Below, one piece after another: positions 309 to 50,010 of a DNA stretch of 64,000 nt. The position numbers were made by a program, and so were the translations under genes. Source of the stretch: Octopus bimaculoides. Taxonomy: Eukaryota. The number at the start of each line of letters is the position of its first letter. The first letter of the stretch is position 1. The stretch spans positions 106,657,553 through 106,721,552 of the forward strand of contig NC_068987.1 of assembly GCF_001194135.2 (NCBI RefSeq), written 5' to 3'. The notes below the pieces were generated by a model. That model worked only from the letters and a program-made list of their open reading frames with translations, did no database searches and was not told the origin of the DNA.

Positions 309-704
309 GATCCATAAAATGCGGAATCCGAATTCACATTCCGCTGTGGTTTTCAGGAATAGGCATTCTGGTAGGTCTTTACCGATGTCAAATTAAGTAG
401 CCGTAAATAATAAGTGAACCGAAACCGTTTTAAATGGTCTGGAGCATATTTCGATACTGTACACAAAGTCATAAGCACGCGCATATATGGTATGAAGCGT
501 ATATAAACTTTCAATCTTAAACTACAGAGAAAACTTGTGAAAGAAAATATGATATGCGAAATGAATATATATATGTAGGCATATGCACATCACACACGGA
601 CGCTCTCTTACACACACAAGCAAACACACGCATACGTATATATATATATGTTTGTATATATAGATGTGTGTGTGTATGTGTGTGTGTATGTGTGTGTGTA
701 TGTG

Positions 705-775
<71 letters not shown>

Positions 776-1449
776 GGTTAAATCAATCAATCGATAGATA
801 AACAGATAGCGATATAAATAAATTGTTAGATGGATAAGAATCTCTTAATAAATTGCGTTTTATTGCAAAAGAAAAAGAAAAAAAAACATACAGACATATA
901 ATAAAATCGAAGTCAAGTATTCGTATTTGACTTTATCCCAATGTCTCCAAAAATATGCTACAAAAGAATGATTTTTAATAAATGTCAGCCCAGCACAATG
1001 AAATTTCGATATACCAAAAGTTGGCAATTATAGGATATCTTGCTGTGAAAGGGAACATATATATTTTTCACAGGTCAAATAACAACAAAAACAGAACACA
1101 TTCGTTATTGTCTAACAGCATCAGCACGAGAAAAAGTAATGAATTTTTTGAAAATCCATATTTGAATTCACATGTTTCCTAGAGTATAATTCTAGGTATT
1201 TCTTCGGTTCGAAATTAGCAATCAACAGGTGCCGGGATGTATTGGGAAAATTCTATGGAATTATTGATCTATCTAACACCTTTATTTTTATGAATAACGA
1301 TTGGTTCAACATAAATGGTAAATTTTGAAATTTACTGAAAACTATTTCTATATTTGCACATATACACAAATATGCATATATAGTAACATACACAAATAGA
1401 TACAAAAGCTTACAACCATATAGTTATGTATATATATGTGTGTATGTGC

Positions 1450-1510
<61 letters not shown>

Positions 1511-1769
1511 CATATATATGTTCGTAAAATCTGCTCTAAAAGTATCGAACAATACGGGATTATTGATGAATATTATTGTTTGCGTTGTTGTATGTGTATG
1601 ATTTTGTGTGTGCGCATGCTTGTGCGCACGCGTGTGTGCGTGGGAGTGTGTTGCGAGCGTGTGTGAGTAAACGGTTAAATGTAAGGAATATACTGTCAAG
1701 AAGAATTTAAAATATGCTTTACTGATCGTCAACATACATTTTCGAAAACTGAAACCTCAATTTGCTGAT

Positions 1770-1801
1770 TCTCTGCTAGACGGAAAGAGAAAGAAGCCCG
1801 T

Positions 1802-1852
<51 letters not shown>

Positions 1853-1910
1853 NNNNNNNNNNNNNNNNNNNNNNNNNNNNNNNNNNNNNNNNNNNNNNNN
1901 NNNNNNNNNN

Positions 1911-1964
<54 letters not shown>

Positions 1965-2000
1965 TGTGTGTCTGCGTCTGTGTCTGTGTTTATTCCCCGT
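1770..2000 (+). mobile_element. SINE-A middle fragment with expanded internal (TA)n/(TG)n tract and gap
   Basis: TAGACGGAAAGAGAAAGAAGCCCGTGGTATAT matches the motif preceding the internal microsatellite in the copies at 23351 and 63246. Confidence 0.6.
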
Positions 2001-2154
2001 CTCCTTTTGCTTGTCCCACATGACCTCATGACAATTTGCCTCGCTTCTTTTCTTGAAACGACTTACGTTGTGAGAAGTATGTGAAGGACCCGTCGGACTA
2101 TCATTTTCTTCCGTATTGCACAGTGGAGGAAAGTGGTAGAAGAAAATCTGGTAC

Positions 2155-2204
<50 letters not shown>
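2155..2204. repeat. (GAT)n microsatellite
   Basis: Direct. Confidence 0.95.
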
Positions 2205-2632
2205 ACATTGGCATCTATCTTCCATTTGCTTTTGTTAATGCTGTATGAGGAGAAAGACAATTAACCATGACAGTTTTCTGGTCCTTCACCGATGCTTAGA
2301 AGGAGAGGAACTTTTATCTAAAGACCGGTGATCTGACACAAAATAATTACAACACAACAAACACCAGTAAACTCACCTGTGCTATGTATGATATCCGCTA
2401 CTGAAGAACAAAGCGGACACTGTTATCGGCCTCCACATGCTTTCTGATTATCACAGATCGAACCGTGTCCATAGTGTCTACAGACTTGCATTTTTATCAA
2501 AGTGAATGATTAATATCCTAAATTATATAGTTGCGAATCTAACCTCTTAATCACATAGAAAAGCTAAATTATGAAGTAACTGTTTCATATTTAAGAGCGT
2601 CAGTGTTTTGATGACATTAATTTAATGACACG

Positions 2633-2962
2633 TTGTTGAAACCCCCTTCGGTCATGACTGAGCATGGGATTGCACCTAGAAAGTTATCCTCCCAGGTACA
2701 AGTCTGGGCAATGTTATTTTATGGAAGACCAGCAGTCGCCCCTGCATACCGGCATCCCCTCTCCACGCCACCAGTGTTATCCAAGGGAAAGGCAAAGGGG
2801 CCGATACAGCTTGGCACAAGTGACGTCGCAACTCATTTCTACAGCTGAGTGAACTGGAACAACATGAAATGAAGTGTCTTGCTCAAGAACACAACACACC
2901 CCGTTCTAGGATTCGAACTCACATCCCCACAATTGTAAGTTCGACGCTCTAACCACTGAGGC
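2633..2962 (-). mobile_element. tRNA-derived SINE, family C (V/CORE-type central domain, tentative)
   Basis: The minus strand begins with a tRNA-like head (CCTCAGTGGTTAGAGCGTC A box, GAGTTCGAATCC B box), then TGTGTTGTGTTCTTGAGCAAGACACTT...CACTCAGCTGTAGAAATGAG and a GC-rich 3' region. Domain naming is from memory. Confidence 0.75.
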
Positions 2963-3672
2963 TAATTTTATGACATAATCATTAAGAAACTGTTAGTATT
3001 AAGTAGTTAATTTGTAAAGAGGATTTATAAAATACTTTGATTTTGCTTTTGGTTTGCAAGTGGATTTATAATAAAAGAGAATACACAAAGTTTACAGTAA
3101 ATATAGAAAAGGGCCCAATATACTGTACAGAAACGTAAACAGTACACGCTTGAACATATGATCGCGAGGAAAGAACTTGTTATGCATGATATTAATTGTT
3201 GTTTGATATTAGTTGTTGTTTGATATTAGTTGTTGTTCAGTTCTAAAAGCCCAGATTGAGCAATAATAAGCAGAGGCATTCTGGACATGGATATCTTCTC
3301 TTCTTATTTCCAAGCTTAGTCTACCATGGGGAACATTATCCAGGGTATGCCTATTTAAAATGGTAGATTAATTTCTAATGCAGATTTGACTTCTGGAAGT
3401 TCAGGCAACCACATGAAATTTCCTGTGTCAAGCAATTACCCTCATTCCCCTTAACTCATAACACATCGCTCATAAAAGTATACAAACACACCTTAGATTA
3501 TGTAGCCATGCACATAGACTACAAATGTGACGGTCATAGCGGGAACAGCTTTTGTTTTATGTTACCTAGAGCAGTGTTGCACATGAGATAATCAATAATT
3601 CACACATGCACGTATGTGTGTATTATTGTAGAATTGTGCAAATATATATAAATGTATATATGTTTGTGTGTC

Positions 3673-3703
<31 letters not shown>

Positions 3704-5135
3704 NNNNNNNNNNNNNNNNNNNNNNNNNNNNNNNNNNNNNNNNNNNNNNNNNNNNNNNNNNNNNNNNNNNNNNNNNNNNNNNNNNNNNNNNNNNNNNNNN
3801 NNNNNNNNNNNNNNNNNNNNNNNNNNNNNNNNNNNNNNNNNNNNNNNNNNNNNNNNNNNNNNNNNNNNNNNNNNNNNNNNNNNNNNNNNNNNNNNNNNNN
3901 NNNNNNNNNNNNNNNNNNNNNNNNNNNNNNNNNNNNNNNNNNNNNNNNNNNNNNNNNNNNNNNNNNNNNNNNNNNNNNNNNNNNNNNNNNNNNNNNNNNN
4001 NNNNNNNNNNNNNNNNNNNNNNNNNNNNNNNNNNNNNNNNNNNNNNNNNNNNNNNNNNNNNNNNNNNNNNNNNNNNNNNNNNNNNNNNNNNNNNNNNNNN
4101 NNNNNNNNNNNNNNNNNNNNNNNNNNNNNNNNNNNNNNNNNNNNNNNNNNNNNNNNNNNNNNNNNNNNNNNNNNNNNNNNNNNNNNNNNNNNNNNNNNNN
4201 NNNNNNNNNNNNNNNNNNNNNNNNNNNNNNNNNNNNNNNNNNNNNNNNNNNNNNNNNNNNNNNNNNNNNNNNNNNNNNNNNNNNNNNNNNNNNNNNNNNN
4301 NNNNNNNNNNNNNNNNNNNNNNNNNNNNNNNNNNNNNNNNNNNNNNNNNNNNNNNNNNNNNNNNNNNNNNNNNNNNNNNNNNNNNNNNNNNNNNNNNNNN
4401 NNNNNNNNNNNNATACTACATATATACGTATGTATATGTATGTATATATGTACGTATGTGTATTCATGCCTAGTTACCCCATCTCTTGCTTCCTCTCTCT
4501 GTCTTTCTCTCTGCCTCTATCTTTGTCTTCTCTTTTGTTCCCCCCCCACATCTACCGCCCACCCGTCCATCTATGTTTTTCTGTATCTTTTATATATTTT
4601 TCCATCACAATAACACCACAGCCTGCTCTACCATTACTATTGACACACACCGTCCACTAACGACATCAAAGTACCTATTATTCTTGAAACGAACCCAATA
4701 AACAAAAAACACACAAACAAACATAAAAAAAAATCTAAACATACGTACGTCCAGCCATGACAGACATTAACACGCACACATACAAACACAAACATACACA
4801 TACACGCTCACACACACACACACACACGCATACACATGCAACCTTCGTACCTTAGACATTTGTATATTGATTGGTCTTGCCCCACACATCACAGTTCTTT
4901 TGTTGTTGATCTTATTGTTGCTGTTATTGTTAATATTATTAATATTATTGTTGTGGTTCTTCTTCTTATTGTTATTATTATTGTTCGCCGGGCTTGCGTC
5001 CGTCGTTATTAATCACACATCAGTCATCGGTGACGACCATGAATCTATTGTCTAAATTATTCTTCAATAATTCTACAATTCACAACCGAGTCTGAGGTCC
5101 CTACAGCAACAAGAATAATAACGCCACCCTTCACC

Positions 5136-5167
<32 letters not shown>

Positions 5168-5484
5168 CACAAACACACAACTCTAGAAATGGGATTTTGT
5201 AACTCTTTCGTTTGTTATATTGTTTTCCTTTCTATTTGTATTTTTTTTTGCCTGTTTATTTTTTGAAACAATTTGTCCTCAATTCTTTGTTGTTTCTCTC
5301 ACCGTTTCGACGCGTCCGTTGATTGGTTACTTCGCATGAGATGACGAGGCTTTCATTGAATTAATATTCTTGATGTCAATGTTATATCTCCTGTTGGAGT
5401 TTTTGTTTTGGTTGTTCTATACATTGTATTGTTTTTTTTTTTTGAACCGTTTTGGTTTTTGCGTTTCACCGCCAAACCACAAAG

Positions 5485-5763
5485 TAAACAAAATCATCAA
5501 CATCATCTTTATCCTCCTTATCCTCATTGTCGTCGTCGTCGTCTCTACCATTATGACCGTCGGCACCACAATCACAACCACCAACGACGACGACGACCAC
5601 CACCACTTCCACCACCACTACCACCACATCCACCACCACCACTACCACTATCATCATCATCATCATCATTACTACCACCACCACAAGCAACTCTACCACC
5701 GTCACCACCAGCAGCACCCAAAATACTGTCACAACCTTCATTATCACCAATTTCATCATCTCT

Positions 5764-5823
<60 letters not shown>

Positions 5824-5930
5824 TTCATAATATTATCATTATCCTCATTGCCATCATCATGATCACCAGCATCGTCATCTTCATCCCCTCCTCCTCTTCC
5901 TCGTCATCATCATCATCGGCATCATCACCC
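5485..5930. repeat. Degenerate (CAT)n/(CAC)n/(GTC)n trinucleotide tract
   Basis: Direct; it accounts for the poly-His/Pro/Ser ORFs in the track. Confidence 0.9.
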
Positions 5931-6248
5931 TCACTGGCGGTGACGCGTGCCCATGGTCAACTTCATTATAAATATCATCATTAACATTGTCCTCATTAAT
6001 ATATGCATTTAGGGTTATCAGCGTGAACATATTTGTTGTTACCATGACCTTATGATGATGTAGGTTTTCATTGTTTCCTTAAAAGCCTGTTCTCGCTAAG
6101 CAGACGTGCATCCGGGCATATATGCTTTCTTTTCTTTCGAGCGTGTATTTACGAACTCATTGTAGAAAACAATATGGTAGACTATGATTAGCAGAATATT
6201 TAACTGCTTTTTCAATTATCTGTTGTTGCAGATGTGCATAATTTAGCG

Positions 6249-6412
6249 GGCGCAGGAGTGGCTGTGGGTAAGTAGCTTACTTACCGACCACATGGTTCCG
6301 GGTTCATTCCCACAGCGTGCCACCTCGGGCAAGTGTCTTCTACTATAGCATCGGGCCGATCAATGCCTTGTGAGAGAATTTGATAGACGGAAACTGAAGG
6401 GAGTCAGTCGTA
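6249..6412 (+). mobile_element. SINE-A 5' half (tRNA-like head plus core)
   Basis: GGCGCAGGAGTGGCTGTGGGTAAGTAGCTTACTTACC...GGGTTCATTCCC...GGGCAAGTGTCTTCTACTATAGC is colinear with 23351-23755 and 63246-63652. Confidence 0.9.
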
Positions 6413-6467
6413 AAGACAGACGAAATATTGCTAAGCATTTCGCCCGGCCTGCTAACCACTAGCCGCC
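6410..6467 (-). mobile_element. SINE-B head fragment fused tail-to-tail to SINE-A
   Basis: The minus strand reads GGCGGCTAGTGGTTAGCAGGCCGGGCGAAATGCTTAGCAATATTTCGTCTGTCTTTACG, matching the head of the copy at 19720. Confidence 0.8.
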
Positions 6468-6474
6468 TTTGTGT

Positions 6475-6643
6475 TTTCTTTTCTACTCTAGGAACAAGGC
6501 CCGAAATTATTGAGGAGATGGTCAGTCGGTTAGATTGACCCCAGTACGCAATTGGTGCTTAACTCATCGACCCCGAAAGGATGAAAGGCAAAGTTGACCA
6601 CGGAGGAATTTGAACTCAGAACGTAAAGACAGACGAAATACCG
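6475..6643 (-). mobile_element. SINE-B 3' portion (host of the LINE insertion)
   Basis: The minus strand starts CGGTATTTCGTCTGTCTTTACGTTCTGAGTTCAAATTCC (B box) and continues through the family body and tail. Confidence 0.9.
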
Positions 6644-8439
6644 ATTTCTTTATTAGCCATAAAGGGCTATACAAATAATTTTTAAGACATCACGAAACAT
6701 AAAGACAGTACAAAACGCAAACATAAAATCGAGGTAATTAAAATAAAATTATAATATGCAAGAATGAAAAAAAATGAGGCGCAATGTCCACTCGATCCCC
6801 GAAGTCGGGTGGTTACATTTATCCAGTTTTTCACTTTTACGTTCAACGTCATGTATACATTTTAACGGTTTTGCAACTCAAAAAATTGAAACACTCGCGT
6901 TATTTNNNNNNNNNNNNNNNNNNNNNNNNNNNNNNNNNNNNNNNNNNNNNNNNNNNNNNNNNNNNNNNNNNNNNNNNNNNNNNNNNNNNNNNNNNNNNNN
7001 NNNNNNNNNNNNNNNNNNNNNNNNNNNNNNNNNNNNNNNNNNNNNNNNNNNNNNNNNNNNNNNNNNNNNNNNNNNNNNNNNNNNNNNNNNNNNNNNNNNN
7101 NNNNNNNNNNNNNNNNNNNNNNNNNNNNNNNNNNNNNNNNNNNNNNNNNNNNNNNNNNNNNNNNNNNNNNNNNNNNNNNNNNNNNNNNNNNNNNNNNNNN
7201 NNNNNNNNNNNNNNNNNNNNNNNNNNNNNNNNNNNNNNNNNNNNNNNNNNNNNNAACCTCTCCACTTTTTTCTCCATCTCCTCGCAATTCTCGTACTTTA
7301 TCAAAGCCCCCTTATATTTCACATCTTTATCCGTTCTCTCCTCCTCTTCTTGTACATTATTAGTTTCTGGTTTTTCTATCTCTTTTTTTGTTTTGTTTTC
7401 TGTTGACCGTTCCTTTGACTTATTTTTCCTTCGCTTTTTAGGATTAGTAGCTCCATTTTCGTTCGTCTCCTTTGTTTTCTCTGTTTCACACTTCTCTCTC
7501 TCTTTCATTTCCTAAGTGTGGTCTACAATGTTTTCCTCCTCTGCTTGTGCTTTCTCTTGCTGTGGCTGTGTGAACTCATATAGGGGGCATTTGGTCTTCA
7601 TATGACCTCTTTCCCCGCATATGTAGCAATTTGGTTTCCTTCCCTCGACTACAACATTTAACGTTCTCTCATCCTCCACTTCTATCTGGTAGGGAATTCT
7701 TTCTATGTCCTCGAATGTGGCAAAAAGCCACATTTCGAGTCCAAATCCCCACCATTTGCGCACTTTTGATTTCGCCACTGGTCTCAATTCCGGCTGCTCC
7801 TTGGCTGCATCCAGCACTGTTGCAACCAACCACTCTGGTTTAATTTCTGGTGTAACTCTAGGAATACGTATTTTCACACGACTTCTTCCTCTATAACTTG
7901 GTAGCAATGCTATTTTTGCACTTCTTAAAATGTTGGTCGAATGCTTGGTTGCCTCTTCTATATTTTCGAACCTCAACTCTACCGTACCGAACTTTCTTCC
8001 TCTGTTGATGTACGTGGCTTCATTCACAATTTCACCCAGGCACTCCTCGATTTCCTCTTCGGTCACCATTTCAATTTTACAGGTTTCGACAGCCTGTGTA
8101 CGATACACAACTGTCCTCAGAATTTTGTTTTCTTTAATCACTTTTGGGGGGCAGAATTTGTATGACTCTCCATCAACTTTTATCAAATTCCTACTTCTGG
8201 TCACCTCCTCCATATCCAACTTGATTAACTTGGTTTCTAGCGGCACTGGCCTCCTCACCGCAGTGGCCTTGGCGAAGCACTCCATACTGGAGACACTACC
8301 ACTTGCCATAGCTGGGGGAAAATGCAGCAGCTCGCGTGAAACGTAACCGTAATAATTCCACAAAAATCACAATTATTCACTGAGACAGTTTTTCACAAAG
8401 TAACACAGCCGTATTCACAATAATTCACAGAGCCGTTAC
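6644..8439 (-). mobile_element. L1/Tx1-type non-LTR retrotransposon inserted in a SINE-B (349-N gap inside)
   Basis: About 130 nt of 5' UTR, a gag-like ORF1, an N gap, and a T-rich 3' UTR ending TAGCCCTTTATGGCTAATAAAGAAAT. Flanked by ACCG at 6640-6643 and 8440-8443 (CGGT on the element strand). Clade is inferred from ORF1 only. Confidence 0.8.
7255..8309 (-). CDS. Gag-like ORF1 with a CCHC zinc knuckle; one in-frame TAG at 7512-7514, then a K/E-rich continuation into the gap
   Basis: Likely start MASGSVSS at 8309. Motif VVVEGRKPNCYICGERGHMKTKCP fits CX2CX4HX4C. Track ORF 6900..7508 is in the same frame, one codon after the stop. Confidence 0.8.
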
Positions 8440-8492
8440 ACCGCTAAGCATTCCGCCCGGCGTGCTAACATTTCTGCCAGCTCACCGCCTTA
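8440..8492 (-). mobile_element. SINE-B 5' head (host of the LINE insertion)
   Basis: The minus strand reads TAAGGCGGTGAGCTGGCAGAAATGTTAGCACGCCGGGCGGAATGCTTAGCGGT; joined to 6643 with one CGGT removed it restores a SINE-B. Confidence 0.9.
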
Positions 8493-8589
8493 ACATTACA
8501 CACGATATTAGCATCTCTACCCGTTAACAGATTACCAGGCGTTTCTTGGATATTCGTAGACATACTTTGAATTTACAGCTATAATCCAT

Positions 8590-8730
8590 GCGACAGGTTT
8601 CCTCACCATTTCTGCCTACTTAATTTAATTCATTCTAACTCAAGCCAATTTGTAGAATGTACTTTTCGACGGTGCCATGCCTAAGGAGAAAATCCAAAAC
8701 ATTTTGATTGAGAAGCGAATTCCCACAATG
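8590..8730 (-). mobile_element. Highly decayed SINE-A 5' half
   Basis: Weak colinear similarity to the SINE-A head and core (TGTGGGAATTCGCTTCTCAATC...GCATGGCACC...GGTGAGGAAAC). Confidence 0.4.
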
Positions 8731-9176
8731 TATATATATGTATATATATATGTATATATATGTATTCGGATAACGCTGACCGCTAATCCGACTCACCATA
8801 ACTCCCAACACATTCATCTTTCTCAGCGTCTTCGTCATCCTCATAGTCGTCGTCATCAACATTATATTCATCATGATCATGAAAGTAATCATCATCGTTA
8901 GCGACTCCGTCACCACCACAACCACCACCACTAATATCTTCATCAGCAAAACCAGCCGCAGCAGCCTCATCGTCGGCCTCATCAGTATCATCATCATTGC
9001 AGTCACGGTCGTCGACATTTTTACTAAAATATCAAATGTATTAAACCCACCAGACCGCAATGATCGCCAGTTAGAAAAAAAAGAAGAAAATAATAAACTA
9101 TAATGAATATAATAAATATAACTAAAAGAATGAACAAATAAAGTGTTTGTTTTTATTGCTACGGTTGTTGTTGCTT

Positions 9177-9177
9177 C

Positions 9178-9241
<64 letters not shown>

Positions 9242-9248
9242 GTTATTA

Positions 9249-9327
<79 letters not shown>

Positions 9328-9330
9328 TGC
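9177..9330. repeat. (ATT)n microsatellite
   Basis: Direct. Confidence 0.95.
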
Positions 9331-10503
9331 TACTACTACGACCGCTGTGGCTGTTTGATTAGTCTGTGGTGGGTCGCTACATGCACTGCAGTACAGTTGC
9401 AGTTGAATAATGAAGCGTGAAGCTGTGACTCCCTCACATCTGATCTGTGAAACTGAAACAGTTCAAAATGAGGAAAGAAGAAAGAAGGAAATACAAAAAA
9501 TATATAATAAATAATATAAAAAGAAGGAAAAAAAGAGAGGGAGAGAAAGAGATAGAGAATGAGTGATGCAGGGAAAGTGAGACAGAAAAAGAACATTAAA
9601 ATGTCAAAAGTCAAAAATAACGAACAGAATTTTAATTACGTCCTGCTGGCTTTCATTATTTAATTAATCATCTATTCGGGCACCCTCCTTCTATCATTTT
9701 CTGGAACTATCATTATTTTTTCTTTTTTTTTTTGGCCAAAACTAATAAAAATATAGGACGAAGAAAAAATTAACCGGAGGAGATAAAATTTGTAATGAGA
9801 TAACTTCGCTATGTGCCGTATGAAGTGAATCTTTGGAGAAAAAACAGAAATATTTAGGGAGGCTGTAAATGAAGATGAGTATATTCTTAAAAGAGTGTGA
9901 AACATAGTAAACTCCGGTAAGATCATGGTCACAGCTAGTTTATATATTTCAGAATGGGCCTGTATACGATAAAAAAAAATACAGTTGATTAGGGAGAAAT
10001 CAATTAAAATGCTGTAGAGTAATTATATTATATTAAATAGATATTATAAAATAATTTTTTGTTCAGCGTAATAGGAATGTCCTTTCGATTAAATGAAGGG
10101 TATCTGAGTAGACGGAAAATGAAGATGGCCCTGCATGATGGAAAATATATTTTGAAAAAGAAATGTTCGTGTAAAATGGCATTAAGGCGCGTTCTGGACA
10201 TATTTTGAAGTATTGAAGCGTGAAGGTGCGCACTAATCATAAACTGAATTTCGCAAAGCAAAATATTTTAAAATGTATGTCGTAAGAAATGGTATATCGT
10301 GTATACATCAGATACCCACGTTAGAATTCAAAGCTTATTTCAGAAAGTCCCTTCAGGACACAACAGTGCGAAGTGTTTTAAGGCTTGCATTGAGAATCTA
10401 ATGTATTTAATTATGAGGGTTCAAACCCGACGCTTTCTGTGCATTCAAGGAATGTTGCAAGATCGTGAATTTTGTAGCCATTCGTATACTAAATTACACA
10501 AGC

Positions 10504-10544
<41 letters not shown>

Positions 10545-11309
10545 CACACACACATATACATATATGTGTGTTGTGTGTGTGTGTTTGCGAGTACATGTAT
10601 GCATATTTATGTGTATGAAATATACATAAATGTATATTTTATAAATATGTTATTTGATTGGGATACGAAGTGACATAACCAAAACTATAAATATTAATTA
10701 TGAATTATATATACAAAAAGCAAATGGTAATCAACCTTTTAACCCCCCAAAAAACATGCAAAATTTATGCACGGAATTCAGTGCATACTTCGGTAAATCG
10801 CAAATACGTTAGACCGCCATAATTTCCGCTATCTTTCACCTTCAAAGGCTTAGATTATTTAACCAACGTACCTTGTAGTTTAGCTCGAGATCTCATTGAA
10901 CATAATATCATGAATAATGAATCCTTCCTCACTTCACTCAGTGTCATTACAGAGTGTATCCGTCTCTATAATACGTGACACACATGTGTCCATGCATGTC
11001 TGTGTGTGTGTGTGTATGTGTTTGTATCTGATCATTGAGGTAATTTTTAGACATGTTGCATAAATTAATAAATGGTTCTAACATAGTAATGAGGAGAGTA
11101 GTCGAGCAGAGCGACTAGTAATAAACTTTGAACTGAACCCGAGGCAATGGCTAGAGGATTTGACATTAGCGCGTTTCGAACTGAGAAAGAAAACAGCTTG
11201 CACAAATACCGGAATATGTTAGGCTTGCTTATGATCTTGTCAATTCGTTGCCTCTGTTTATATATATATATGTGTGTGTGTGTGTATATATATATCTAAA
11301 TATATATCT

Positions 11310-11342
<33 letters not shown>

Positions 11343-12149
11343 AATATGTATATATGTATATGTATATATNNNNNNNNNNNNNNNNNNNNNNNNNNNNNNN
11401 NNNNNNNNNNNNNNNNNNNNNNNNNNNNNNNNNNNNNNNNNNNNNNNNNNNNNNNNNNNNNNNNNNNNNNNNNNNNNNNNNNNNNNNNNNNNNNNNNNNN
11501 NNNNNNNNNNNNNNNNNNNNNNNNNNNNNNNNNNNNNNNNNNNNNNNNNNNNNNNNNNNNNNNNNNNNNNNNNNNNNNNNNNNNNNNNNNNNNNNNNNNN
11601 NNNNNNNNNNNNNNNNNNNNNNNNNNNNNNNNNNNNNNNNNNNNNNNNNNNNNNNNNNNNNNNNNNNNNNNNNNNNNNNNNNNNNNNNNNNNNNNNNNNN
11701 NNNNNNNNNNNNNNNNNNNNNNNNNNNNNNNNNNNNNNNNNNNNNNNNNNNNNNNNNNNNNNNNNNNNNNNNNNNNNNNNNNNNNNNNNNNNNNNNNNNN
11801 NNNNNNNNNNNNNNNNNNNNNNNNNNNNNNNNNNNNNNNNNNNNNNNNNNNNNNNNNNNNNNNNNNNNNNNNNNNNNNNNNNNNNNNNNNNNNNNNNNNN
11901 NNNNNNNNNNNNNNNNNNNNNNNNNNNNNNNNNNNNNNNNNNNNNNNNNNNNNNNNNNNNNNNNNNNNNNNNNNNNNNNNNNNNNNNNNNNNNNNNNNNN
12001 NNNNNNNNNNNNNNNNNNNNNNNNNNNNNNNNNNNNNNNNNNNNNNNNNNNNNNNNNNNNNNNNNNNNNNNNNNNNNNNNNNNNNNNNNNNNNNNNNNNN
12101 NNNNNNGTATATACACATATGTATATATACATATACATATATACATATT

Positions 12150-12182
<33 letters not shown>

Positions 12183-12309
12183 AGATATATATTTAGATAT
12201 ATATATACACACACACACATACACACACACACACACACATAGATATATATATATATACACATGCATACACAAATATATAACTATGTGCGTCTGTGTGTGT
12301 ATGTATATA

Positions 12310-12507
12310 TACGAGAAGGTCTATGAAAAGGTACAAGAATGTGGTACAAGATATCTGATGAAGGTAAACGTCTTCAAGGCTCAAATGTTTTCATACACCC
12401 CTCGTATATATACGAGAAGGTCTATGAAAAGGTACAAAAATATGGTACAAGATATCTGATGAAGGTAAACGTCTTCAAGGCTCAAATGTTTTCATACACC
12501 CCTCGTA
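12310..12507. mobile_element. Tandem dimer of a 93-bp mariner-like MITE
   Basis: Units 12312-12404 and 12413-12505 each have imperfect TIRs CGAGAAGGTCTATGAAAA / TTTTCATACACCCCTCG, are flanked by TA and are separated by TATATATA. Confidence 0.7.
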
Positions 12508-12540
12508 AGTCCAAATAAACATACACATATACACGTATAT

Positions 12541-12830
12541 GGAGGCGCAGACGTGGTTGTGTGGTAAGAAGCAAGCTTCCCAACTCTGTGGCTCCGGGTT
12601 CAGTTCAACCACGAAGCACCTTGAGCAAGTGTCTTGTATTATAGCCACGGGGTTACCAAAGACTTATGAATGAATTTGGTAGACGGAAACTGAAAGAAGC
12701 TATCGTATGTGTGTGTGTGTGTGTGTATTTGTCGCTCGCCGCCGGTTGACAACCGATGTTGTATATTTATGTTCCTGTAGCTCGGTAAAGAAACCGATAG
12801 GATAAGTACTAGCCTCAAAAAAGGAGTTCC
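12541..12830 (+). mobile_element. SINE-A, diverged, with internal (TG)n
   Basis: Head, core, (TG)n and 3' domain (TTGACAACCGATG...GATAAGTACTAG) occur in family order. Confidence 0.85.
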
Positions 12831-12922
12831 ATGCTCGATTTCTTCGACGAAAAATCATTGTAAGTCTACTACACCTTATAGCAGAAACATAAGATAATAA
12901 TTTCTTACTCTGTCCTCTCTCC

Positions 12923-13011
<89 letters not shown>

Positions 13012-13102
13012 NNNNNNNNNNNNNNNNNNNNNNNNNNNNNNNNNNNNNNNNNNNNNNNNNNNNNNNNNNNNNNNNNNNNNNNNNNNNNNNNNNNNNNNNN
13101 NN

Positions 13103-19510: not shown

Positions 19511-19719
19511 GGGTAAATACATTTGATGAGCAAAAATGAATATGATCAGATATACTAGGGTTACTCTAAAGGAAGACTCTTTATAAAAACAACTCTTCAT
19601 ATGCTAGCAAATGAGTTTTGCATAGGATTGGGTTGTTTCGCTGAGTGACCTCCCCATAATATATTCAATTAGAAACAACTGGCATTGCTGTAAGACAGTA
19701 ACAAGCAGAAATGTTAGTT

Positions 19720-19954
19720 AAGGCGGCGAGCTGGCAGAATCGTTAGCACGCCGGGCGAAATGCTTAGCAGTATTTCGTCTGCCGCTACATTTTGAGTTAA
19801 AATTCCGCCGAGGTCGATTTTGCCTTTCATCATTTTGGGGGGTCGATTAAATAAGTACCAGTTACACACTGTGGTCGATACAAGCGACTTAATCCGTTTG
19901 CCTGTCCTTGTTTGTCCGCTCTGTGTGTAGCGCCTTGTGGGCAGTAAAGAAATA
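19720..19954 (+). mobile_element. Full SINE-B with LINE-like 3' tail and 13-bp TSD
   Basis: TSD AGAAATGTTAGTT at 19707-19719 and 19955-19967; A box TGGCAGAATCG; B box GAGTTAAAATTCC; tail TGTGTAGCGCCTTGTGGGCAGTAAAGAAAT. Confidence 0.9.
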
Positions 19955-20887
19955 AGAAATGTTAGTTTGTCAAGACAAAATAACTGATGGCTTTTAGTGA
20001 CAGCCTTTTAATTTAATTTTCCCAAGGTTATCTTTCTTTAATTATTCTGGTGTCGTTAAAATAGAGTACCACTTAAATAATATCCTCGATTTTATCTGTT
20101 ACTTCCCTCCTTCAAATTGCGTCTTTTTCTAAAATTAAGCTAGCATGGCAATGAATTATTTTAAGGTGGTATGCAAAGAGAAACTTGTTGGAGTACCAGA
20201 GATAATAACCTGTGGTAGTCATGGTTATTTAAGTAATGGGTTCAAATCCTGTCGAACAAAACTCTGATTTCATTCGTTCGAGGTTCATAAGTATATTTTC
20301 CCTAATTTTTGGCTTTGTGCATATTTAGCAACAAATATCTAAGAGTTATTCTCTATTATAGCTGTAACAATGAAATATCTGGAGAGATTTACATGGAAGT
20401 CATCCTAGACATTGATAGAATTCAATAACATTAAAGCAACTTGATATTTCCTCCCTTGTCTGTACCTTAATGCCACATGTCGATATCTTTGAATAATGGC
20501 TTTAGGTAATTTCATTGAGAAGTCAGTAAGTTTCTAAACCGACTCAGCTTCTTTCTACCATAAGAAATTATAATCACTGGTGGTGCTTCATCAATTATTT
20601 ATCATTATTGTCACTGTTGTCATGAAAAATGACGCTGGGGTGTTGGCTTCTTCGTGTGTGAATGTTTGAACGCCGGATAACAGTTTCTATGCTAACGCTC
20701 AATAGAAGTATCTTCACTTTGCGAGGTCAAGTTTTAAGACACATGGAGGTTATTTGGAATATCACAAGTTGTTCGGATTAAGTTCGAATTGTGGTGACAT
20801 GTACATACATACATGCATGCATACATACACATATATATAGAGAGAGATACATACACACACAGACACACAAGCACATATAATTATATG

Positions 20888-48825: not shown

Positions 48826-49789
48826 TATANNNNNNNNNNNNNNNNNNNNNNNNNNNNNNNNNNNNNNNNNNNNNNNNNNNNNNNNNNNNNNNNNNNNNNN
48901 NNNNNNNNNNNNNNNNNNNNATATATATATATATATATATATACATACATGTATATATCTATATATATATATATATATAACATATATATACGCCCATACA
49001 TAACTTTACATATATACATTCATACATACATATGTATATGCACACATACACACACGCACCACACACATATGTATATACAAAACAACATATATGCGTACAC
49101 ATGACATATTAGGAAACAATTATTGCTTCAATGCGAAATTGACAACTTTAATTAAGTACTAGATATTGTGCGTATGTATTTGTCAGTCGTCTCATCCTAC
49201 ACTAAACTGTTATTTGCTAAGGTGAGTTAAGCATTTAGATAACTGAATGTAATCACACGCATACACACATAAAATCGCATGCGCACAGTCACACACAGAC
49301 TACCACTTAAAAGATGTGAACATACGCGCAAACAGTCACGCACACACAAGCCAGAAGCTGCAATAGTCATATGCGTATTCGCACATACGCCCATTCGAGG
49401 ATTCGCACACAAATACAGAAGAACATAGTTACGAACATAAAGACATAATTACACACCGACATGGGTAACAGAATGAATAAATTTATAATTCACAGAATAC
49501 ACTTTCTCAAGTGCTCTTTATTGTGAATAGGTTTTCATGTTACTGGAAATGGAAAAGCATTCGTTAGACAATCAATTACTTTTCATGGTGGAAGCACAGA
49601 CTTCGACTATCTGGTTTCATTCCTCTGACGGGCAGTATGAAATCTATGCATCACAGATGAACCATTAATAGGACTGAATTATATATGTTAGAAATAGTTT
49701 TTCCTACATGCTGCTATATTTAAAACAACATTAGGAACTGATTCGCACTCGAATTATTCCCAATTAGACTTTAATATTTCTTACATTGA

Positions 49790-50010
49790 AGGCGGTGAGC
49801 TGGCAAAATCATTAGCACGCCGGGCAAAATGCTTAGCGGTGTTTCGTCCAGCCTTATGTTCTGAGTTCAAATTCCGGCGACGTCGACTTCGCCTTTTCGT
49901 CTCTTTCGGGGTCGACAAAACGTACCAATTGAGCACCGGGTTCGATGTAATCAACTAATAATACCTTCTCCGAAATTACTGGCCTTGTGCTGAAATTTGA
50001 AAGCAATATT
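49790..50010 (+). mobile_element. SINE-B with the common tail (GGCCTTGTGCTGAAATTTGAAAGCAATATT)
   Basis: Intact head including the empty site CTTAGCGGTGTTTCG, B box and body. Confidence 0.9.

Follow-up and report, generated by a model that had tools for sequence, protein, structure and literature searches.

The window analysed here is a stretch of 64,000 nucleotides of the Octopus bimaculoides genome (contig NC_068987.1), in which one copy of a short interspersed nuclear element (SINE), here called SINE-B, is interrupted by an insert related to long interspersed nuclear elements (LINEs). The insert occupies positions 6644–8439 of the minus strand (1796 bp, including an assembly gap of 349 N) and has the same orientation as the SINE. 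Read along the minus strand, the order is SINE-B head (8492–8440, SINE positions 1–53), insert (8439–6644) and SINE-B body (6643–6475, SINE positions 50–218, with a type 2 tail), head and body forming the 5′ and the 3′ flank, respectively. Both flanks were delimited by BLASTN and by MAFFT alignment with intact SINE-B copies, and the ends of the insert are set by the split itself: the head ends with GCTTAGCGGT, the insert starts with GTAACGGCTCTG and ends with GGCTAATAAAGAAAT, and the body starts with CGGTATTTCGTC. By direct reading, the target duplication is of exactly 4 bp, CGGT on the minus strand (accg on the plus strand), with one copy at 8440–8443 and the other at 6640–6643. When head and body are joined and one CGGT is removed, an uninterrupted SINE-B of 218 nt is obtained, which aligns with the intact copies at 19719, 49789 and elsewhere. 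The corresponding point, at about 19753, 49822 and 6445 in other SINE-B copies of the window, is occupied by no insert. So, the split with its duplicated CGGT, the common orientation and the empty sites, all of them described in the initial annotation of this DNA, are borne out by sequence and alignments.

The 3′ end of the insert, also as annotated initially, was read directly as a hairpin, TAGCC-CTTTAT-GGCTA (6654–6669), followed by ATAAAGAAAT (6644–6653); no poly(A) was found at this end, and the target, CTTAG^CGGT, is unlike the TTTT/AA type. Two other kinds of mobile sequence were tried as candidates and discarded. For a Helitron, 5′-TC...CTRR-3′ ends, insertion at A/T and no duplication would be expected, whereas the insert has the ends GTAACGG...AAGAAAT, a 4-bp duplication and a G^C site. 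An L1-type processed retrocopy is ruled out by the absence of poly(A) and by the CTTAG^CGGT site. Concerning the SINE itself, in which the site had been placed initially between presumed A and B boxes, no tRNA was called in SINE-B by either ARAGORN or Rfam. Directly 3′ of the split copy, the region 6240–6470 is a dense nest of SINEs, with a truncated SINE-B head (6409–6456, minus strand) adjoining a different, tRNA-like SINE (6240–6400, plus strand).

The insert begins with a 5′ untranslated region (UTR) of 130 nt (8310–8439, minus strand; start GTAACGGCTCTGTG), and the second O. bimaculoides copy described below begins at the same nucleotide (ATAACGGCTCTGTG). An open reading frame (ORF) of 265 codons follows on the same strand (7512–8309), taken from the ORF list, from the ATG at 8309–8307 to a TAG stop at 7514–7512. 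Its CCHC zinc knuckle (CYICGERGHMKTKC, 7587–7628, minus strand) was recognized by the Pfam zf-CCHC model with E=7.9e-5, and the CCHC gag-like ORF1 of the initial annotation stands thereby, with a single knuckle. The AlphaFold model of the product has a pLDDT of 82.5, and all the 50 matches listed by Foldseek against the Protein Data Bank were RNA-binding proteins of the tandem RRM (RNA-recognition motif) type, with E around 1e-4. From these matches, the product is predicted to contain two RRM-like domains and one CCHC knuckle. Pfam and the predicted fold thus give the window ORF the arrangement of the type I ORF1 protein (ORF1p) of the Tx1 clade, i.e. RRM domain(s) followed by CCHC knuckle(s). 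This RRM plus CCHC type occurs in LINEs of the Tx1, I, Jockey and R1 types.

Past the TAG, the same frame continues as a K/E-rich stretch (7255–7511, minus strand) that runs into the assembly gap and is homologous to the relatives P0001, P0003 and P0007, which read through. The TAG at 7512–7514 is private to the window copy, all the relatives having GAG (Glu) at that point, and with its premature stop the window copy is a dead one. On the other side of the gap, the end of the ORF and the 3′ UTR (6644–6905, minus strand) are 94.6% identical to the second O. bimaculoides copy (locus L010, 10677–10936) and correspond to positions 1522–1782 of a unit of 1782 bp from O. vulgaris. Within this 3′ UTR there is a conserved stem-loop (AAATGTAACC..CGACTTCGGGGATCGAGTGG.., 6783–6820, minus strand), about 80% conserved with the O. 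vulgaris units and folding as a hairpin in both species, in a UTR that is otherwise diverged.

It could be argued that the ORF belongs to a cellular CCHC gene, or to a processed retrocopy of one, and not to a transposable element. UniProt and NCBI do hold gene models of it and its relatives (P0002, P0007, P0290), named 'CCHC-type domain-containing protein', and the tandem copies found in O. vulgaris could resemble a gene cluster. P0002 (A0A0L8HUA5) is a spliced gene model of the window ORF itself, which splices around part of it, and the protein matches likewise point to O. bimaculoides as the origin of the DNA. Against a cellular origin, there are precise ends with target duplications, a 3′ tail of the LINE/SINE type, no introns, numerous diverged copies with stops and frameshifts, and the homology of the ORF to the ORF1 of a LINE bearing an apurinic/apyrimidinic-type endonuclease (APE) and a reverse transcriptase (RT). 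Considering all this, a cellular gene seems extremely improbable. Neither P0007 nor the window ORF led to any contig when looked up by exact match.

The initial annotation had implicitly taken the insert for a LINE with an ORF2 encoding APE and RT, and this was not borne out. Of the sequence on both sides of the gap (6906–7254), the 1185 nt to its left are colinear with positions 1–1207 of the 1782-bp O. vulgaris unit and the 262 nt to its right with positions 1522–1782, so that 314 nt (1208–1521) of the unit would correspond to the gap. In L010, both sides are joined by 203 nt (10474–10676) of continuous ORF, which encodes LEEIIRVK...INGRK and ends in a stop. The gap would then stand for about 200–315 nt of the ORF C-terminus, with no ORF2, the 349-N estimate being roughly right or somewhat long. 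Because of the colinearity with the O. vulgaris unit and the junction in L010, both sides can be taken as one element in the right order; and even if they had been mis-scaffolded, each junction alone would still show an element end at the same SINE-B site.

An autonomous, full-length Tx1/L1 LINE with its ORF2 hidden in the gap was considered, given that draft gap lengths are merely estimates and that full-length relatives with ORF2 exist (L002, L005, L008). In these relatives, however, ORF2 comes after the C-terminal domain of ORF1, a point at which the window element is already in its 3′ UTR; the counterpart of the gap measures 314 nt in the ORF2-less unit of O. vulgaris and 203 nt in L010, the latter being the continuous C-terminus of ORF1 with its stop. 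A full-length LINE is therefore very unlikely. No match to ORF2 was found in the 64-kb window, and the window element lacks the ORF2 with APE-type endonuclease, RT and C-terminal zinc-binding motif that is a feature of the Tx1 clade. From these comparisons, the insert is an ORF1-only, non-autonomous relative of 1.65–1.8 kb rather than a full LINE.

The second O. bimaculoides copy was of special interest concerning the target. Locus L010 (CM046603.1, 103.09 Mb) was chosen by protein similarity alone, via P0290 (isoform X1, LOC128247323). Its copy (9589–10936) is 91–95% identical to the window insert and is flanked by SINE-B positions 1–53 upstream and 50–243 downstream, in the same orientation as in the window. 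The junctions are ..GCTTCGTGGT/ATAACGGCTCTG and ..AATAAAGAAAT/CGGTATTTCGTCTG in L010, compared with ..GCTTAGCGGT/GTAACGGCTCTG and ..AATAAAGAAAT/CGGTATTTCGTCTG in the window. In both loci the insertion point falls on one and the same SINE-B nucleotide and the same 4 bp are duplicated, except that the upstream copy in L010 reads TGGT instead of CGGT (TGGT/CGGT). Thus, both O. bimaculoides copies (2/2) show a target preference, which is frequent, though not general, in the Tx1 clade. The host SINE-B is of type 1 in L010 and of type 2 in the window, with 3′ halves that cannot be aligned to each other; identity between the hosts is about 82% in the heads and 79% in the bodies, versus 91–95% for the inserts. 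Nothing was found to match between the outer flanks of both loci outside the SINEs. As the host SINE-B subfamilies differ and the outer flanks are unrelated, both insertions can be considered independent. A scan of all the DNA examined for more interrupted SINE-B sites gave the known ones only. In L010, the gene model LOC128247323 (10001–31887) joins the transposon ORF to distant downstream exons, a fusion that is probably an annotation artefact.

These data allow two further explanations to be weighed. The first is chance, i.e. that an element with no target preference landed in an abundant SINE. Of the O. bimaculoides DNA examined (97 kb), 4.2% is SINE-B (14 recognisable sites), SINEs make up 11.6% of the O. 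vulgaris genome (PMC13282606), which was counted in favour of chance, and the scanning of many windows will reveal nestings of this kind. Nevertheless, L010 was picked regardless of its flanks and shows the same nucleotide, orientation and duplication in another SINE-B subfamily, and random insertion would hit precisely this position in this orientation with a probability of about 7e-5. A chance landing is accordingly very improbable. The second is that there was one ancestral insertion, and that SINE head, element and SINE body were afterwards copied as a block, by segmental duplication or composite retrotransposition. It finds support in the first 60 nt of the SINE-B body at the 3′ junction, which are about 92% identical between both loci, although these nucleotides form a B-box-like region that all SINE-B copies conserve. 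The different subfamilies of the SINE-B 3′ halves, the lower identity of the heads than of the inserts and the lack of outer homology make block copying improbable too. The element appears, instead, to aim at SINE-B and not to land at random, and the SINE-B targeting suggested in the initial annotation from one insertion receives strong support from the independently retrieved L010. Taking the sequence comparisons together, the insert is probably an ORF1-only, Tx1-like, SINE-B-specific retroposon.

The affiliation to Tx1 was approached through the relatives of the ORF. An exhaustive profile search gave 740 relatives at E≤1e-3, and the 20 that were looked up include proteins of O. bimaculoides, O. 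vulgaris, O. sinensis and Argonauta, as well as Logan/ENA sequences. One of them, P0012, is 36% identical to the window ORF over 211 amino acids without gaps (BLASTP E=1e-39; profile search E=4e-40), and it is the ORF1 of a LINE of 5273 bp in O. vulgaris (locus L002). The ORF2 of this LINE has Exo_endo_phos, RVT_1 and zf-RVT domains and matches the Xenopus Tx1 ORF2 (YTX2_XENLA) with E=4e-88; among the matches to it, the only informatively named ones are to Tx1 (YTX2_XENLA and an alligator 'transposon TX1 149 kDa protein'), two fish matches having generic RT names. It is known that L1-Tx1 families are annotated in O. vulgaris (PMC13282606). A homology search with a profile of 17 sequences retrieved close relatives only and gave no link to the Xenopus Tx1 ORF1, low-complexity words having probably swamped the candidates. 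By homology, it is supported that the window element belongs to a Tx1-type lineage. The Tx1/L1-type designation given initially is thus kept as to lineage, through the homology of ORF1 to the L002 LINE and the Tx1 matches of its ORF2, and dropped as to ORF2, which the window element lacks.

Other members of the lineage were met in the loci retrieved. In O. vulgaris, the protein nearest to the window ORF, P0005 (53% identity), belongs to units of 1.78 kb with a single ORF of 461 codons and no ORF2, and in locus L003 (7906–9670) of the same species there is a solitary ORF1-only element of about 1.73 kb (P0022) with an 18-bp duplication, GCTGGGTTCG(T/G)CTA(G)CTCT. Since the O. vulgaris units and the L003 element are likewise ORF1-only, such half-LINEs are recurrent in the lineage. 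In L004, an ORF1-only copy without the usual tail (P0023) is surrounded by a direct repeat of about 75 bp (7715–7795 and 9710–9785), which would represent a duplication of unusual length or else a partial tandem repeat. L002 holds in 445–13026 a tandem array of complete Tx1-like LINEs, with a period of 5273 bp, at least 2.4 copies and 98–99% identity, the junctions of which bear short variable 8-mers (CACTGATA, CACCCGAT) resembling the upstream flank AACCCGAC. In O. sinensis, a decayed full-length relative (L005, 7720–13370; ORF1 = P0011) has (ATT)n on both sides, which suggests a microsatellite-targeting subfamily.

Concerning the 3′ ends, a common module was observed. The end is ..TATAGCCCTTTATGGCTAATAAAGAAAT in the insert, ..GCCCCTCGTGGGTAATAATAAAAT in the O. 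vulgaris units, ..GGCCCCTTGTGGGTAAATAAAATAAAA in the L002 LINE and ..TAGCGCCTTGTGGGCAGTAAAGAAAT in SINE-B type 1 (e.g. window 19931–19953), and the last 45 nt or so are common to LINE, ORF1-only element and SINE-B type 1. The tail pattern had two matches in the window, versus 0.03 expected. The terminal hairpin with its ATAAAGAAAT tail (6644–6669, minus strand) is a candidate recognition module for RT; the same module ends the LINEs of L002 and L008, the O. vulgaris units, the elements of L003 and L005, and SINE-B type 1. Taken alone, the hairpin has a modest thermodynamic stability (z = -2.0); what supports it is that its position is conserved in six related elements. The octopus elements thus share the 3′-terminal sequence that characterizes stringent LINE/SINE partnerships, and such a tail would fit the pattern of LINEs and passengers with a common RT recognition tail.

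The two subfamilies of SINE-B have unrelated 3′ halves, type 2 being represented by window 6475–6643 and 49789–49988, and type 1 by 19719–19953. The type 1 tail matches that of the L002/O. vulgaris LINE, and the type 2 end, ..GGGCCTTGTGCCTAGAGTAGAAAAGAA, resembles the tail of the L003 ORF1-only element. In four out of four cases, copies of SINE-B type 1 are followed by (A/T)AGAAAYGTTAG (window 19707–19967; L010 11090–11340 and 35960–36360; L009 6960–7345), which is SINE-B from position 18 onward in three of the four; L009 has a 16-bp duplication, and in the window a 13-bp duplication, AGAAATGTTAGTT, lies at 19707–19719 and 19955–19967 in non-SINE DNA. This looks like a second specific target in the SINE-B head, one that would be used by another passenger of the same LINE group. 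Tandem clustering of SINE-B was also seen, with four copies head to tail, 13–15 nt apart, in L010 (35984–36786), and again in the window at 53275–53590.

The sister family of O. vulgaris forms arrays and appears to be site-specific as well, which adds support to the targeting of SINE-B. At five loci on four chromosomes (L001 4268–18523; L006 5301–10645; L007 3498–8871; L008 9300–11952; L009 9299–16382), a full-length LINE is immediately preceded by a head-to-tail series of 1.5 to 8 ORF1-only units (5/5). The arrays, with their 1.78-kb units, were found by self-BLAST, having been missed by Tandem Repeats Finder with its period limit of 500. The upstream flank is common to four of the five loci, that of L007 being a different context, so in all four loci with a visible upstream flank the family sits at the same host site. 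Every junction bears the 15-mer CACNTG..GGAAATC. In L008, the LINE tail is followed by CAACCTGGAGGAAAGC and by sequence that continues a decayed ORF1-like frame (..EDLNNLEESTIENMKDI..RGGKFATIEARF), and because this flank continues the host reading frame the 15-mer is duplicated host sequence, of 15–16 bp, coming from a decayed ORF1-like repeat. Between loci, the host flanks are 94% identical, versus 86–92% for the LINE 5′ parts in nine of ten pairs (98.6% in the pair L007–L009). Such a pattern would fit independent insertions of different LINE variants at one site, and it also fits arrays that grow as each insertion regenerates the target. Two other origins were considered for the arrays: a template-jump model was rejected, each junction bearing 15–16 bp of host-frame sequence, and descent from one amplified nest is disfavoured by the higher identity of the host flanks than of the LINE 5′ parts.

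A mechanism can be proposed for the insert, which is probably a non-autonomous half-LINE of the Tx1-like lineage without endonuclease or RT of its own. It consists of the 5′ UTR, an ORF1-type gene for two predicted RRM-like domains, a CCHC knuckle, a linker rich in K/E and a small domain at the C-terminus, and the 3′ module of the lineage, composed of the UTR stem-loop, the terminal hairpin and AATAAAGAAAT. The RNA of the element would be bound by its own ORF1 protein, and its 3′ tail would be recognized by the ORF2 protein (APE endonuclease and RT) of an autonomous Tx1-like partner. The partner endonuclease would nick SINE-B at CTTAG^CGGT on the bottom strand and 4 nt downstream on the top strand, and target-primed reverse transcription would then produce a full-length copy, co-oriented with the SINE and with CGGT at both sides. 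A read-through RNA ending in CGGU could pair with the nicked target and may help to register the start of the cDNA, a role that such RNA is reported to have in other site-specific LINEs. The ORF1-only units of O. vulgaris and the LINE next to them have the 3′ tail in common. For O. bimaculoides, mobilisation in trans, recognition of the tail and the endonuclease as the source of specificity are only what we infer, because an autonomous partner with this tail was not found among the sequences retrieved.

The lack of such a partner counts against the interpretation of the insert as a SINE-B-specific, Tx1-like passenger, and so do four other points. The specificity is based on two O. bimaculoides copies. 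The Tx1-clade placement comes from best named matches and domain architecture, and not from an RT phylogeny. No intact active copy was seen at the DNA level, as the window copy has its premature stop and the L010 copy an internal assembly gap, full read-through being seen only in UniProt models such as P0001. Finally, the targets are unlike each other (CGGT in SINE-B, a host 15-mer in O. vulgaris, (ATT)n in L005, 18 bp in L003): a comparison of these four kinds of site revealed no motif in common, and no common recognition rule is apparent.

A wider interpretation is possible, although it is offered tentatively and is rather doubtful as yet: the octopus Tx1-like LINEs could constitute, together with their passengers (half-LINEs and SINE-B), a self-referential system whose landing pads are the LINEs' own passengers or relatives, with several distinct endonuclease specificities for different points of the SINE-B head (position 50, CGGT; position 18, AGAAAYGTTAG) or for the ORF1 of an older relative. 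If this were true, each insertion would regenerate its target and serial insertion would build head-to-tail arrays, and a high-copy SINE would be a genomic 'safe harbour' kept by the LINE that spreads it. As to the SINE-B-specific retroposon, should a census confirm it, some of the nesting and tandem arrangement of repeats in octopus genomes would be explained, and a partner LINE would be identified for a major octopus SINE. Biochemistry would also gain an APE endonuclease that is sequence-specific by nature and cuts with a 4-bp stagger, and 'CCHC-type domain-containing protein' models (A0A0L8HUA5, LOC128247323 and others) would be flagged as transposon ORFs.

With respect to known systems, the literature records Tx1-clade elements with other transposons as their target (PMC4494074, PMC1950540), and the behaviour of the octopus relatives agrees with that of the clade. 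The targets of the clade include Tx1D for Tx1L, Mariner for Tx1-Mar and SINEU, and microsatellites and small RNA genes for others (PMC4494074, PMC1950540, PMC3706591), and passengers share the target preference of their LINE (PMC4494074). The octopus element is like Xenopus laevis Tx1L, Tx1-Mar (into Mariner-N4_AMi), Keno, Kibi, Koshi, Mutsu and Dewa in its insertion at a defined sequence, often inside repeats; the ORF2 of the autonomous octopus relative shares their architecture and has its match in the Tx1 ORF2, and serial insertions into one target occur in octopus too. It differs from them in that the target is a SINE, with the 3′ tail of the LINE group itself, in that the element has no ORF2, and in its end, which is the hairpin plus AATAAAGAAAT without poly(A). 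No cephalopod case of a SINE as the dedicated target of an ORF1-only derivative was found in the literature searched, and the combination of SINE target, ORF1-only passenger and cephalopod host appears to be new and undescribed.

HAL1 (half-L1) of mammals encodes ORF1p only and depends on the ORF2 protein of a partner (PMC5753468). The octopus element, as a non-autonomous LINE derivative encoding ORF1p only, resembles it, but HAL1 derives from mammalian L1, has an ORF1p of the coiled-coil type and integrates non-specifically in a poly(A)-dependent manner, whereas the octopus element is of a cephalopod Tx1-like lineage, with RRM plus CCHC and a specific tail and target. It would thus be an analogue of HAL1 and not a member of it. 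On the other hand, the O. vulgaris arrays, with a LINE placed after the ORF1-only units, recall HeT-A with TART/TAHRE at Drosophila telomeres, where a gag-only element uses the RT of a related element and forms head-to-tail arrays. HeT-A, TART and TAHRE belong to the Jockey clade and are added to chromosome ends with no target duplication, whereas the octopus arrays are chromosome-internal and each of their units is bounded by 15–16 bp of duplicated host sequence. Finally, the 3′ tail common to the octopus LINE, the ORF1-only element and SINE-B type 1 is like that of stringent LINE-SINE pairs such as UnaL2/UnaSINE1; those pairs are of the L2, CR1 or RTE types, whereas the octopus LINE is Tx1-like, from a group more often provided with poly(A) ends.

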